A stretch of 64,000 nucleotides of DNA from Eutreptiella sp. 'Long Island Sound 2002' (Eukaryota > Protista > Euglenida), in contig OZ038378.1 of assembly GCA_964036045.1 (NCBI GenBank), positions 174,344,001 through 174,408,000 on the forward strand. The letters run 5' to 3'. The translations under genes were made by a program, and so were the position numbers. The notes beneath the pieces are model-generated. The model was given only the letters and a program-made list of their open reading frames with translations, did not search any database and was not told the origin of the DNA. Shown here piece after piece: positions 2,170-10,390 of this stretch. Every line of letters begins with the position of its first letter. The stretch's first letter is position 1.

Positions 2170-4916
2170 TGTAAGCGACAGGATTATCCCACAGCCTCAA
2201 CGCGCATAAAGAACTGCACAATCCCATCTCTTGTAACTCAGATTGTTATACCCTTTGTCCGGGTCATGTCATATCTACACAAGAATGATATCAATGATAA
2301 AACACATACAAACATGTACAAATACACATGAATCTCATCATTCGAAATCTCGGTTTAATCTTTATCCGCACTCACGCGCGACCTACATTCTGCAACTATC
2401 GCGACTGCAAGCGCTGCAACTCATTTCCATTACACTCCCCTCCTAAGACCTGACATACACCTATGGAGGGGTCTGAAAATCATCAAATCTTATGGGGATG
2501 AGTTGCTGTGCCATATATAATCTGTTGGGTGCCTCAATGCAATCTGCAATTGGTTCAAATACACCATGGGGTTAGTCACCATGACCCTACACACTCCCCT
2601 ACCAAGCTTCAGGACCCCTGCCCCTAGCTGTCTAAGGCGGGCCTACTATGCCTCAGGGCCTAGCTGTTCAAACTGCTCTATAACATGCTTCAGTCACCTT
2701 AGCTTTCTATAGACTAGTGTGCAATGCCTCAACCCCTAGCTGTCTAGGCCTGAGTGTGTATCATACAATATTTTGATAAATTAGATTGAGAATTGGTGTT
2801 GAATTGTACAAAAAACTGGCAACCCATATGGCACAATAAAATAAATTACAACATCAGTGGGGGCTTTTTATTGTTTCCAGTGGCTTGGCTTTTCCTGCTG
2901 CACCTGCACAAAATATTTTGCTCCAAAAACCCACTGCTGGATTTTTTCCAAACAGTTTTCACAAAAAAGAGCCATCAGTGGTATGGCTACTCATGCAAAA
3001 ACAATGGTCCTCTGGGCGCACACCAGAGACCAAAACTGTTTTCAGAGGTTCAATAAAAACAGTTGTCATGCCCCACGCGAAAAGGGCAGAGTGGCCCGGG
3101 CTCCAACCAGCGCCACTGTAACCAGCTCCCTGCAATCCCTGCAAGGACCAAACACAAAGAAAAAAAAGAGCAAACTGCTTCCACACAAGCAGTGCAGAAT
3201 TCCAAAGCTGGGCAAACACGCCAGCGCAAGGACTCATCAGAGTCCACTGAGTGTCTCTCCAAAAGAAGGCACCCCACAAAATTAGGTGCAAAGCCAAAAA
3301 ACAGGCCTGAACTCAGGAGGGTCAGCGCCAAAGGCAACTGCAGTGGCAGCGCCATCGCTGATATATATAAGCCACTGAAAAAACTCGAACCCCAAAACAA
3401 CCCAGATGCCACAAAGGCACACCAGGGCACTGTCGCAAAAAAATAAGGCAAACCTGATAATATGTATGCACCAACCAGTGCAAAACACGTGTTGGCTGAG
3501 GCTGCCGGCGCCTCAGCGACATACCTGTTTTTCTCATCCTGCTCATTTGCATGCACAACATGCAACAGTAAGTGCCAAACAAACGGCGCTACCCAACGAC
3601 TGACAAACGAGGGAATAAACACCACCAAAATTCAGTGAGCAGGGCACACAGGACGCGCAAGCACATCCACTACACACCCACACCTCTGGTGTCACTGTTT
3701 CGCACAAACACACCCAAGAGCGGACGCGCACACACATCAACACTCGTGAATGCATAAGCTGTGAAACCTCCCACAAATGTAATTACACGTCAAGCGCCTC
3801 TGATGAACTCGTCGTTTGTGTCGCTCGTCGCTTGCGACACCGCGTCCTCTTGCTCCTTGTCTTCGGCTGTTCACACGCCGACTGCAACTCTGCCTCTGCC
3901 GCATCTAGCGCCGCCACGAAAGACTCCCAAAATTCTTTCGTTCCCGTGGGCTGAAGACTGGGCTCCGGCGCCCTCTCTTTGGGCTTTCGCAAAACCTAAG
4001 GCTCGCCGTTGTTGCTCAGAGCGCCTCCACACTTGTCATTGTCGCTCCAGTACAGCGCGGCTCTCTGCTCCGTTCGCCTACCTGTGTGTCTCTCTGATTC
4101 GTTCGCCTTTGGAGGATGACTGTCTTGCTGTAGTTCCCATTGCGCTTGTGTGACGAACTCTGCAGCGTTCGGCGCCTCGCTCGCCAAGTTGGTGAGCGCG
4201 TTTGGCGCCTCCTTTGCTCGTGAAAAATTTTCTTGGAAGCAATCACTCATGTGTTCCTCTTGTTTTTGCACCCACAAGGCTTGTTCAATGCCGCCGGCTC
4301 CGCACTCCCAAAGGTCTCCTCTCCTCTCTTCTCTACCCTTGCGATACCTCTCGGCTCTAGCGTTTCTCAGCTGCGCAGCAAAATCGGCGGCTGCTTCCTT
4401 GAGTCCCAGTCCCCTGTTTACGGCGTGTATGGCACAAGCTCTCACTGCTCTCTCTTGCGCTATTTCTCGTACCGATCCCTCTGTGCGACTCATGATCCCT
4501 CTCACCAGCAGCTCATCGCAGCACTCGACGATCTTGTTGTCATCCAACATGTTGAGCAAGCGCTACCGAAAAAGGTCTTCAGGGACTCCTTGGCAGCATC
4601 GGCAACGGAACCCCACCTGCCTGTCAGAACCCGGAACTTAGGTAACAATCTTGTAAGCGACAGGATTATCCCACGGCCTCAACGCGCATAAAGAACTGCA
4701 CAATCCCATCTCTTGTAACTCAGATTGTTATACCCTCTGTCCGGGTCATGTCATATCTACACAAGAATGATATCAATAATAAAACACATACAAACATGTA
4801 CAAATACACATGAATCTCATCATTCGTAATCTCGGTTTAATCTTTATCCGCACTCACGCGCGACCTACATTCTGCAACTATCGCGACTGCAAGCGCTGCA
4901 ACTCATTTCCATTACA
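2170..4916 (-). mobile_element. Non-autonomous LTR retroelement (265-bp LTRs, 2.2-kb internal region)
   Basis: LTRs 2170-2434 and 4652-4916 (TGTAA...TTACA, 4 substitutions seen). 5-bp TSD CCAAA at 2165-2169 and 4917-4921. PPT on the minus strand at 2435-2447 (cttaggaggggag). No RT or integrase ORF inside. Confidence 0.93.
3996..4559 (-). pseudogene. Helical/charged ORF remnant just downstream of the PBS, possibly gag-like
   Basis: 187-aa ORF in the position where gag is expected in the LTR element 2170-4916. No diagnostic motif recognised; the call is positional. Confidence 0.3.
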
Positions 4917-5030
4917 CCAAACACATCCAAGGGGCAACAGAAGGGTTTCAGGAAAAGTCAAAATGTGAAAAACTTTCAAGAGTCACTAAACAGCCTACGC
5001 AACAGCAATTTTGAGGCTTTCAGAGGGCCC

Positions 5031-6322
5031 ATTCCAATGAGTTTTTGGTCCGGACCCCCCCAGACCGCCTGCACTTGAAACCCACTTTTTTCAGGTTTTG
5101 AGGGAGGTGGGTGGGGGTGGGGTGGGGTGGGGTGGGGTGGGGTGGCCGGTGGGGGCAGAAATGTCGAAAGAATGACACCCCTCCTCTTTTTTTTGGTTGA
5201 AAATCAGGAATCTTTTGGTTTTTTTCAATTTTGAGCCAAAAAATTCTTTCCGGGTCCCGACTCCATGGGGTTTGTATGGGGCGGAGGGGGACGAGTGCTG
5301 ATGCAGTTAATGCATTTTTCAGCCATTTTTGCTATGTTTGTGGTTTTGGCGACATCGGTGACCCCGTGGTACCCACTCTGAGGGGTGTGAGTGGGGATGT
5401 TGTGACAGCATATGCCTACTAGGATACGGAAGGACGTTTTTTTGCAGTCTCTAGCCTTGCTGAGAGCCGGTAACAAGCCGTGCCAGAGACGCCAAATGAC
5501 TGTTTCTACCAATAATGGCCCAGTGAATGGGCCGGTACACAACCTGCTAATGCAGCTTTTCACACCGGGCAGCTCAAAAATCGAAGTTTTCGAAACTTAT
5601 TTTTATGATACTGTGATCACCTAAAATGGCCATCCAAGGTGTTAAAGCATATTTTAGGCCATATTTACATGTTTTCCCCCCCATTTGGGTATTAGGTCCG
5701 AGGGGGGTATGGGGGGCTCACGAGGGATTGGTAGAGAACCTGCTAATTCACCTTTCCACCCTGGGCAGCCCAAAAATCGAAGTTTTCGAAACTTTTTTCT
5801 ATGATACCGTGAATCACCTAAAATGCTTTGTAAAGCATGTTTTAGGCCGTATTTACATGTTTTTTACCCTATTTGGGTATTGGGCGCACTGAGGGGGGGG
5901 GTTTTCCCAAGGGATTGGTACACAGCCTGCTCATGCAGTTTTTCACCCTAGGATGCTCGAGAAATGGAAGTTTTCGAAACTTCTTTTTCTCATACCGTGA
6001 TCACTTAAAATGACCGTCCAAGGTATGTAAAGCATGTCTTAGGCCGTATTGGCGTGTTTTCGCCTTTGGGCGCGCCGCGGGGGGGGGGTTCTCCGGGGGG
6101 GGGGGGGTCTCCCAAGGGATTGGTACACAACCTACTCATGCAGTTTTTCACCCTGGACAGCTCAAAAATTGAAGTTTTCCAAACTTGTTTTTTTGATACC
6201 AAGATCACCTGAACTGACCATCCAAGCTATGTAAAGCATGTTATATCGTGTTTTCCCTATTTTCTGTGTGTGTTGCTTGGAGTAGATTGTCTGCGAGGCG
6301 GATTTACCCAAGGCAATAGAAT
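5031..6322 (+). mobile_element. Copy 1 of a dispersed non-autonomous element with internal ~195-bp tandem repeats
   Basis: Unique 5' body (ccaatgagtttttggtccggaccc...gggtcccgactccatggggtttgtatgggg...), then about 4 units containing gctcaaaaatcgaagttttcgaaactt...gtgatcacctaaaatgaccatccaag...ttttaggccgtattt, then a terminal block ...tctgcgagg...aaggcaatagaatt. Confidence 0.8.
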
Positions 6323-6714: not shown

Positions 6715-9700
6715 GAAATCACGTCGCAGAGGTTGTTGGATCAAAGCCATGCAGGCGCATATAGGACATACCCATTTAGGCCTTTTTGAGGCTATTCGCA
6801 TACCCTACCTCAAGGGGTGTAATCGTTAGCCTAACCCTTTATGAAATTATCATTCTGTCCAATAAACGCATCCCCCCGTGAGTTTCTGGTCCAAACCCTC
6901 CCACATCACGCCTACTTGAAACCCACTTCAGAAATCAATCCGAAATCAGAATCAGAAAAATAAGTTTCGAAAACTTCGATTTGTGAGTTGCACATAGTGA
7001 AAAACTACATAAGCAGGTTGCGTACCAATTCCTTGGGACCCCCCCCCCCCCCCGGACCTGTCACCCAAATATTGTGAAAAACATGTAAATATGGCCCAAA
7101 ACATGCTTTACATACCTTGGATGGTCATTTTAGGCGATCACAATATCATAAAAAGAAGCTTCGAAAACTTCGATTGTTGAGCTGCCCAGGGTGAAAAAAA
7201 CTGCATAAGCAGGTTATGTACCCATCGCTTGCGAGACCCCCCCCCCCGACCGGACTTAATACCCAAATAGGGTGAAAAGCGCGTAAATACAGCCTAAAAC
7301 ATGCCTTACATAGCTTGGATCGTCATATCGTGTGGTCACCGTATCATAAAAATAAGTTTCGGAAACTTCGATTTTGGAGTTGCCCGGTGTGAAAAGCTGC
7401 ATAAGCAGGTTGTGTACCGGCCCATTCACTAGGCCATTGTTGTCGGAAAAAGTCATTTCACGTTTTTGGCACGGCTTGTGACCGGCTCTCAGCAAGGCTA
7501 AAGACTGCAAAAAAATGTCCTTCCGTATCCTAGTAGGCATGTACTGTCACAACATCCCCACTCACACCCCTCAGAGTGGGTACAATGCGGTCACTGGTGT
7601 CGCCAAAACCAGAAACGTAGCAAAAATGGCTGAAAAGTGCATTAACTGCATCAGCGCTCGTCCCACTCCGCCCCATATAAACCCCATGGAGTCGGGACCC
7701 GGAAACACTTTTTCGGCTCAAAATCGAAAAAAAACCAAAAGATTCCTGATTTTGAACCCAAAAAGGGGGGGGGGTTCGTTTTTTGACCCCCCCCCCCCAC
7801 CACTCCCCCACCGCCCTCAAGACTTGAAAAAAGTGGGTTTCAAGTAGGGGTGGTGTGGGGGGGTTTGGACCAAAAGCTCATGGGGGGATGCTTTTATGGG
7901 ACAAAATACTTATTTCACAGGAGGTTTGACGAGCAATTCAACCCCTTCAGGTAGGGTACGCAAATAGTGAAGCAGAATCGGTAACGATCCCCGCGTTTGC
8001 ATTTTTGTAGCAGAGCTTAGCGTCGCGAAGGCTTCTCGCGCATAGCGCGAAGTCACGCAAATGACGCAATTTTACGTCAAGAGATTGACTGAAGGCAGCC
8101 AAAAGCTGCCGTTACGTGTTTTTATTTGGCATTTATTTTTTATATAGTTAAATTCTGTAGCTTAATATATGCGATTTGCGTGGTGTATGTTAATTCTGTT
8201 TGTTACGGAATCTGTTTGTCGTTGACGTTCAGGTTTGTGTCATATGGGAGGACCGTCAAAGGTTCTCAGAATTATTTGTAGGCCGGCACTGGCCTGAACG
8301 CCGCATCCCTCGTCCTGGGGCAGCATGCCAGGGCATCGTGGACGCAGAGTACGCCCTCGTTGAGGGCCAAAGGTGTGGAATACGCCGGTGGCGCTTAGCA
8401 TCGTGGCAAGAGCGCCCTCGTTGAGGGCCTACGGCTACTGGCCTATGGCGCTCAGCATCGTGGAAGCTGAAAACTGGAAGGTCTCAGCCTATGATGGATT
8501 CACTGAAAGAAACCCTCGATACAGGTTAGACCTCCTGTGGATTTGGTGCGCTGCGTTTGCTATTGGGTGCCAGCAAGGCTTGGACGATCCAAGGGTTTGT
8601 ATCTTTGCATGAGCAGCAGGATATTTTATTATCAAAATCAATCTGTGGTTCAAAAAAGCTCGCAAGGAGTTCAGCTTTTCTCACGTGAAAGCAAGGCAGG
8701 ACCAAGCGTGCGGCGGCAAAGTATGCAGGAATACCAAGGGATCAGCATCTTGTTTTTCTCACGTCAAAGCAAAACAAGGGATCAGCATCTTGTTTTTCTC
8801 AAGTCAAAGCAAAGCAAGTGTGGCCAAGACAAGCTGGATAGCAAAATGGTAGACAAATCAGTGGATCAAGAAAGGGAAAATCAGTGCAAGGCAGAGATTT
8901 TCAAGATCAAAGAAACAAGTTCAGCGCAGTGTCCCGTGGGTCTCAAGGGTCGAAGGCCTCACGCTCCGCGAGGCCCCACGGTACCGCTTCAAAATAATTC
9001 TGAAGGAGCGTCTAGCCGCCTTAGACGCGTCCGATCATGTGTTGCAAGCAGCCGCGTGTGGAGTGGACAACAAAACTGAAGATTCCCGAATCCTTCGAGG
9101 GGTACACGTTCCGTGCCAGCGTGTACAAAGTATGGGTGCTCCCGACCATGGTCCACAGTTACAGCGGGTGGTGAAGAAAGGTGCACAAGACCAGCATCGG
9201 TGCTGCACGGAAGCCATGATGCGTCGGAGGAGACAACGTCGAAGCAGGCCTTCGTTCAACCTTCGAGGTCTCAGCGAGAGTCGCCAAGTAACGTTGGAGA
9301 AGCCCGTCTTCGCGGCCGGCAACCTGGCTAAGCTCTTAGGAGGGGCATGAAGCGGAATCGGTAACGATCCCCGCGTTTGCATTTTTGTAGCAGAGCTTAG
9401 CGTCGCGAAGGCTTCTGGCGCATAGCGCGAAGTCACGCAAATGACGCAATTTTACGTCAAGAGATTGACTGAAGGCAGCCAAAAGCTGCCGTTACGTGTT
9501 TTTATTTGGCATTTATTTTTTATATAGTTAAATTCTGTAGCTTAATATATGCGATTTGCGTCGTGTATGTTAATTCTGTTTGTTACGGAATCTGTTTGTC
9601 GTTGACGTTCAGGTTTGTGTCATATGGGAGGACCGTCAAAGGTTCTCAGAATTATTTGTAGGCCGGCACTGGCCTGAACGCCGCATCCCTCGTCCTGGGG

Positions 9701-10390
9701 CAGCATGCCAGGGCATCGTGGACGCAGAGTACGCCCTCGTTGAGGGCCAAAGGTGTGGAATACGCCGGTGGCGCTTAGCATCGTGGCAAGAGCGCCCTCG
9801 TTGAGGGCCTACGGCTACTGGCCTATGGCGCTCAGCATCGTGGAAGCTGAAAACTGGAAGGTCTCAGCCTATGATGGCTTCACTGAAAGAAACCCTCGAT
9901 ACAGGTTAGACCTCCTGTGGATTTGGTGCGCTGCGTTTGCTATTGGGTGCCAGCAAGGCTTGGACGATCCAAGGGTTTGTATCTTTGCATGAGCAGCAGG
10001 ATATTTTATTATCAAAATCAATCTGTGGTTCAAAAAAGCTCGCAAGGAGTTCAGCTTTTCTCACGTGAAAGCAAGGCAGGACCAAGCGTGCGGCGGCAAA
10101 GTATGCAGGAATACCAAGGGATCAGCATCTTGTTTTTCTCACGTCAAAGCAAAACAAGGGATCAGCATCTTGTTTTTCTCAAGTCAAAGCAAAGCAAGTG
10201 TGGCCAAGACAAGCTGGATAGCAAAATGGTAGACAAATCAGTGGATCAAGAAAGGGAAAATCAGTGCAAGGTAGAGATTTTCAAGATCAAAGAAACAAGT
10301 TCAGCGCAGTGTCCCGTGGGTCTCAAGGGTCGAAGGCCTCACGCTCCGCGAGGCCCCACGGTACCGCTTCAATAGCCCCGAAAAGCCCTT
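6715..10390 (-). mobile_element. Inverted copy of the same element family (terminal modules at both ends), interrupted by the LTR element 7968-10371
   Basis: 6950-7900 is the reverse complement of the body and tandem units of 5031-6240. The terminal module gtagggtacgcaaatag|ccccgaaaagccc is split by the LTR insertion. Confidence 0.7.
7968..10371 (+). mobile_element. Young non-autonomous LTR retroelement (two 1024-bp LTRs, 356-bp internal region; TRIM/LARD-like)
   Basis: LTRs 7968-8991 and 9348-10371 (TGAAGC...GCTTCA, about 5 substitutions seen). TSD ATAG at 7964-7967 and 10372-10375. PPT cttaggagggg(ca) at 9335-9347. No coding capacity for RT or IN. Confidence 0.93.

Follow-up and report, generated by a model that had tools for sequence, protein, structure and literature searches.

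Reverse transcription of a young, helper-dependent LTR retrotransposon in a euglenid genome is probably primed by the element's own RNA, in the manner of the yeast element Tf1. The element was found in a stretch of 64,000 nucleotides (here called the window), where it occupies positions 2170-4916 on the minus strand. It is complete and 2.7 kb long, with an interior of 2.2 kb. Both LTRs are 265 nt long and run from TGT to ACA (5' LTR, 4916-4652; 3' LTR, 2434-2170), and they differ at four positions (98.5% identity). Identical 5-mers (CCAAA on the plus strand) at 2165-2169 and 4917-4921 form the target-site duplication. A polypurine tract, AGGAGGGGAG, was read directly at 2435-2444 (minus strand, as the reverse complement) and abuts the 3' LTR. 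No reverse transcriptase, protease or integrase was detected in the element with Pfam, and it therefore cannot copy itself. With its LTR pair, target duplication, primer-binding site, polypurine tract, many copies and no reverse transcriptase, integrase or protease, it was classified as a non-autonomous LTR retrotransposon.

The LTR of the window element (family A) begins with TGTAATGG and gave at least 165 candidate matches in the 2.28-Gb assembly. Family A is young and multi-copy, because the 40 matches that were scored are 97-100% identical and pairs of its LTRs are spaced 2.3-3.2 kb apart in the genome. Six copies on different chromosomes (L003, L004, L006, L011, L018 and L019) have one common flank of 40 nt after the 3' LTR; either these elements lie inside another amplified repeat, or the flank is a preferred target. 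Within the window, a run of GGGGT repeats is located directly beside the element (5080-5150), and poly-G/poly-C tracts border many of the nearby repeat units.

The only conserved ORF of the element is located at 3996-4559 on the minus strand. A premature TAG shortens it to 187 aa in the window copy; other copies have 258 aa (L032:1501-2274). Its product begins with a helical N-terminal domain, continues with a P/Q/E-rich repeat region and ends in a basic C-terminal tail. Assignment to a Pfam family was not obtained, the Atlas entry was blank, and the AlphaFold model had a mean pLDDT of 50 with no confident fold; an Rfam search of the element returned nothing usable. Thirteen relatives were matched among 1.84 billion representative sequences, all of them probably from the same organism. 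By sequence comparison the ORF is restricted to this element lineage, within which its identity across families is 33-67%. A Gag-like, RNA-binding role would be a guess. At one locus (L061:2788-4420), two tandem units about 1,186 nt apart, each with internal sequence, a C-type leader and the ORF, follow one another with no LTR between them, and the homologue of the ORF has become fused into a longer open frame, about 840 aa in length (listed with 908 aa in the genome search).

The first nine nucleotides after the 5' LTR, AGATTGTTA (4651-4643, minus strand; H1b), form the candidate primer-binding site and contain no TGG. Their exact complement, TAACAATCT, lies inside the LTR at 4730-4722 (minus strand; H1a), where it constitutes the proposed self-primer and stops 70 nt short of the LTR end. 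Of 20,000 dinucleotide-shuffled LTRs, 2 had a 9-mer complement anchored at offset 0 (P = 1e-4); with offsets of 0-3 allowed, P was 1.3e-3. The predicted energy of the LTR-leader duplex was -26.2 kcal/mol as compared with -15.3 +/- 2.3 kcal/mol for shuffled sequences, none of which (0/300) reached so low a value (z = -4.8). An earlier note on this DNA had described a site lacking TGG and its perfect 9-bp complement, and direct reading of both segments agrees with it. The AT-rich tract that it placed about 45 nt upstream of the LTR segment was found at about 35-55 nt, and the comparison with shuffled controls that it had suggested was run on this element, with the anchored P value and the energy z-score just given. 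What it alternatively described as about 11 bp with a 2-nt bulge is better taken as nine base pairs, then a 3-nt bulge and a helix of 3 bp.

Five sister families from the same genome (B, C, E, F and G) were compared with family A. They were collected by a six-frame search with the ORF, which recovered relatives of about 40% identity, and by pattern searches with conserved leader motifs, which gave 18 and 34 matches as compared with 1 and 3 in the controls. In the ORF-found relatives, the LTR starts and the 3' interiors could still be aligned with the window element. Each sister family has a different 9-mer after its LTR, complemented by a 9-mer at the homologous position of that LTR. The LTR and leader strands are, respectively, TGTCGATCT and AGATCGACA in family B (L057, L059, L069 and L074), TGACGGTTT and AAACCGTCA in family C (L072), CGCCAATTT and AAATTGGCG in family E (L067), TGAACGTCT and AGACGTTCA in family F (L075 and L084), and TGAATTTCT and AGAAGTTCA in family G (L076), the last with one G.U pair; the corresponding strands in family A are TAACAATCT and AGATTGTTA of the window. 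The element of family G is 2.5 kb long and has a 5-bp target duplication.

When the sequences were aligned with pairing left out of account, the LTR strands of the families fell into the same columns, that of family E within one column. In alignment A2, for which representative copies had been picked for intact pairing, so that the covariation counts are to be read with this selection in mind, 100% of the cells pair and 7 of the 9 pairs have changed on both sides; none of 500 shuffles matched this, and sliding the partner by 1-3 columns lowered pairing to 26-49%. Between families, 3-6 of the nine bases are different, and the boxes on either side are almost invariant. Rapid change of exactly these bases between near-invariant boxes is what self-priming predicts. 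Within families, individual copies have single mismatches that are not compensated, often at CpG sites; such mismatches agree with decay after insertion, as is expected in dead copies. Since it covaries across six families, the complementarity between primer-binding site and LTR is supported by the sequence data as real and functional.

Pairing sets in directly behind the terminal ACA of the LTR in each of the six families and ends after exactly 9 bp, the tenth position being mismatched. For DNA synthesis to define that LTR boundary, the 3' end of a primer must sit at the first base after the LTR. Tf1-type self-priming is the best reading because all six duplexes start where this 3' end must sit, and the constant limit of 9 bp fits a primer of fixed length. 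As a further observation, the 9-mer of each of the six families opens with a pyrimidine and then a purine, which resembles an initiator, and the proposed cut is followed by a purine (window 4722-4730 and its counterparts in L069, L072, L067, L084 and L076).

The following course of events is proposed from the observed anatomy, complementarity, covariation and position. The LTR-derived RNA bases 4730-4722 would fold back onto 4651-4643, and the RNase H of a helper would cut the RNA after 4722, between 4722 and 4721. From the freed 3' end, synthesis would then run across the final 70 nt of the LTR and yield strong-stop DNA. In Tf1, plus-strand DNA copies the primer and thereby rewrites the primer-binding site. 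If the plus-strand DNA of the window element likewise copied its primer, the site would be rewritten to match, and the change of the two 9-mers in step between families would be explained by this rewriting. Two short helices (4736-4734 with 4642-4640, and 4746-4741 with 4634-4629) may stabilise or position the duplex.

Leaders of several copies are stacked (L057:2022-2146, L059:2030-2153, L067:1-267 and L075:1-220, all on the minus strand). In family B, the family's own LTR and a leader of 23 nt precede the final 8 nt of a C-type LTR, behind which come a primer-binding site and leader of C type. The leader of family E is succeeded by two remnants, the first of B type and the second of C type, and a C-type remnant lies behind that of family F (L075). 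New LTR modules seem to have been gained on the 5' side through template switches at the end of the cut RNA.

The two short helices were recovered together with the 9-bp helix in an independent RNAalifold run on a longer alignment. Of the 18 pairs in the complete structure, 11 are compensatory in the copies chosen for intact pairing, and 0 of 500 shuffles reached that number. The middle helix comprises 3 bp between AGG on the LTR strand (Ma, 4736-4734, minus strand), which is separated from H1a by the 3-nt bulge, and CCT in the leader (Mb, 4642-4640, minus strand); in family F, AGA is paired with TCT. The outer helix is formed by ACCCGG on the LTR strand (H2a, 4746-4741, minus strand) and CCGGGT in the leader (H2b, 4634-4629, minus strand). 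It measures 6-9 bp across families and has compensatory changes in C, E, F and G: ACCCGT/ACGGGT in C and G, ACCCAA/TTGGGT in F, and a longer form in E. Three duplexes are thus present, and both accessory ones use LTR bases upstream of the primer; the U5 part of the LTR is unalignable between families.

The position of the accessory strands (4746-4734, upstream of 4730) implies either that the RNA starts further upstream or that these helices form with the 3' LTR copy, since a start at 4730 would exclude them from the RNA 5' end. Outer helices on the U3 side would accordingly point to a bulged primer of about 26 nt, or to a contact between the 5' and 3' parts of the RNA that guides strand transfer. 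Under the former explanation, the RNA would start at or upstream of 4746, all three helices would form within one RNA 5' end, and the cut would again follow 4722. Covariation of the middle and outer helices, whose LTR strands lie 5' of the 9-mer, speaks for this, as do recombinant subfamilies that carry the LTR and the first 23-27 leader bases as a single module. Copying of 26 nt would, however, make the leader a perfect complement, whereas the bulge and an internal loop are kept in six of six families, and only the 9-bp helix changes quickly. Moreover, families A, B, C, E and G have in common a TAGATAT box (4753-4759 in the window, minus strand, where H1a follows 30 nt downstream), and in A, B, E and G the distance of 30-33 nt (41 nt in C) is that to the 9-mer, not to H2a. 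A long primer is a possibility of some substance, though a doubtful one.

The TAGATAT box is a possible TATA-like element, judged by its sequence; family F lacks it and has only an AT-rich stretch of another kind, located some 40 nt upstream of the 9-mer. The spacing of the box weakly favours an RNA start near 4730, the position put forward in the earlier note, with the accessory helices on the 3' LTR copy. In the second explanation, which is unlikely, the leader would pair with the 3' LTR copy of the same or a co-packaged RNA and guide first-strand transfer, in addition to or in place of a 5'-terminal primer of 9 nt. It takes account of the fact that the U3-side strands of the middle and outer helices are certain to be in the RNA only from the 3' LTR copy, in which the H2a and primer strands are intact (2264-2240; H2a box, 2264-2259; primer segment, 2248-2240). 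The start of the duplex exactly at the LTR boundary and its stop after 9 bp would nevertheless be left unexplained.

In a further explanation that was considered, the true primer would be a host RNA (a fragment of a tRNA, for instance, or some other small RNA), and the LTR-leader duplex would serve in regulation or packaging. Retroviral leaders, too, have U5-leader helices around the primer-binding site, and the comparison with tRNAs covered 18 sampled genes with 8 anticodons only, several of them plastid-like. These genes have at most 8 nt in common with any leader, in no case at the tRNA 3' end. Six different 9-mers in six families would demand a separate host RNA for each, which would also have to match the LTR of that family; TGG is absent from the site in all six, and no other candidate site adjoins the LTR. 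This explanation is therefore very improbable. A chance match in a decayed element, for which it can be said that one 9-mer alone is weak evidence, was rejected as practically negligible in view of the shuffle result (P = 1e-4), the covariation of the 9-mer and of the whole structure across six families, and the membership of the element in a young multi-copy family.

For Tf1-type self-priming, the arrangement described here may differ from the Tf1 pretzel: a fixed primer of 9 nt, a three-helix LTR-leader duplex with the outer helices on the U3 side, and a radiation of helper-dependent families. This more specific proposal is put forward tentatively and is rather unlikely to hold in all its parts.

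The tRNA search yielded matches with identical scores at C7:94070885-94092425 and on the small contig C2317, both of the bacterial or plastid type (Val-UAC, Ala-UGC); the pair looks like an insertion of plastid DNA or a misplaced organelle contig. A 23-nt sequence, which we take to be the Euglena spliced leader, had 5,596 matches in the genome as compared with 0 for the reversed control, spread over chromosomes (e.g. C1:29492-29514). This count is far above what would be expected from tandem SL-RNA gene arrays alone, and retroposed copies bearing the spliced leader may contribute to it.

The helper was searched for with several queries. A protein search with the ORF gave only short non-coding relatives, and no pol gene was present in the 10 kb downstream of the 5' LTRs of families F and G. 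A profile search for integrase (rve) returned 26,985 candidates, the best of which were on small contigs. The RT_RNaseH search returned 35,678 candidates; the best 150 were near-identical, and many had an open frame of 1,564 aa. Two loci were obtained in the chromodomain search, one of which is not a chromovirus and the other a chromodomain-bearing gypsy locus. Among the ORF, rve, RT_RNaseH and chromodomain results examined, no self-primed autonomous helper was found.

The RT_RNaseH candidates represent one very abundant gypsy family, the commonest autonomous Ty3/gypsy family sampled, of which one copy was analysed (C1:167339500-167355500; L091-L093). It is intact and 10.35 kb long, with LTRs of 300 nt (99% identical), a CTTG duplication, a Gag with CCHC motif and the order PR-RT-RH-IN. 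Its leader begins with AG followed by TGG (TGG at +3), the usual tRNA-type layout. An anchored LTR complement of at least 6 nt was absent from this copy, and its duplex energy was at the shuffle mean (z = -0.04). A matching primer tRNA was not present among the 18 sampled tRNA genes, and a pattern derived from the TGG-type site matched a non-tRNA repeat and so gave no tRNA candidate. From its sequence, the sampled element looks tRNA-primed. The earlier note had suggested that self-priming may be the dominant mode in this genome; with TGG at +3 and no LTR complement in an abundant autonomous element, this suggestion was not supported, and the sampled copy shows, for one copy of one family, that self-priming is not universal in the genome. 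Its LTR begins with TGTTATGG, close to the start of the window family (TGTAATGG), and this likeness is a weak hint that the abundant gypsy element could be the helper. If so, its RNase H must be capable of cutting RNA duplexes even though the element is not self-priming itself. Three more ORFs (206, 358 and 461 aa) follow pol in this copy, the 358-aa one without a Pfam match, and immediately upstream of the copy is the 3' part of another.

A second LTR element is present in the window at 7968-10371, with LTRs of 1024 nt and a 4-bp duplication (ATAG). It has a 12-nt anchored LTR complement after its LTR (P ~5e-5). DNA similarity between it and the element at 2170-4916 was not found, in keeping with the earlier view that the two are unrelated; the differences reported then in LTR sequence, LTR length (265 and 1024 nt) and target duplication (5 and 4 bp) were all seen again.

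Precedents for self-priming are Tf1 and Tj1, the Tf1/sushi group and, among plants, the Tcn1 and TAR lineages (PMC7175516, PMC4600332, PMC10085805, PMC6317226). As in Tf1 and Tf2 of Schizosaccharomyces pombe and in the Tf1/sushi group (Tj1, Tosmo, Maggy, sushi-ichi, Tcn1), the primer-binding site of the window element directly follows the 5' LTR, has no complement among the tRNAs sampled, and forms a perfect duplex with a short stretch of the LTR that lies some 50-75 nt before its end. The change of primer from family to family and the accessory helices around a central duplex are likewise common to both. The duplex of the window element has 9 bp, however, and theirs 11, and the host is a euglenid instead of a fungus, vertebrate or moss. 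The window element has no pol gene by which it could be placed in a phylogeny of reverse transcriptase or integrase. Tf1 requires a 'pretzel' of three duplexes, two of them accessory and using LTR sequence downstream of the primer, whereas the accessory helices of the window element lie upstream of it (PMC10085805).

For plant Tcn1 chromoviruses and TAR Ty1/copia elements, self-priming was likewise deduced from sequence geometry (Neumann et al. 2019, PMC6317226). Those elements are autonomous, and the argument made here also uses covariation among sister families. With LARD and TRIM elements, the window element has in common its LTRs, target duplication, primer-binding site and polypurine tract, the lack of reverse transcriptase, integrase and protease, many near-identical copies and mobilisation in trans. 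At 2.7 kb it lies between typical TRIM and LARD sizes, and it differs from both in keeping a lineage-specific ORF of about 258 aa and in being, as proposed, self-primed and not tRNA-primed. Long-range helices between U5/LTR and leader that flank the primer-binding site also resemble the U5-leader and U5-IR helices of retroviruses, whose primer-binding site binds a tRNA, while that of the window element pairs with the LTR.

The mechanism itself is already known; what is new is the host group and the form that the signal takes. In the literature searched, no paper linking Euglena with self-priming was found, and primer sites are not discussed in a 2026 preprint on methyltransferase-bearing LTR elements of Euglena. 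Self-priming has so far been known mainly from Tf1/sushi chromoviruses of fungi, vertebrates and mosses, together with predicted cases among plant TAR copia elements, and its occurrence in a euglenid would widen this range. It would then be either much older than thought or easily re-evolved. The euglenid case rests on covariation and not on a single match, and the six families form a natural set of compensatory mutants with which the mechanism becomes directly testable. The position of the accessory helices bears on the choice of primer and on the guidance of strand transfer. When Euglena genomes are annotated, such families would be missed or misjudged by LTR finders that depend on a primer site of the tRNA type.
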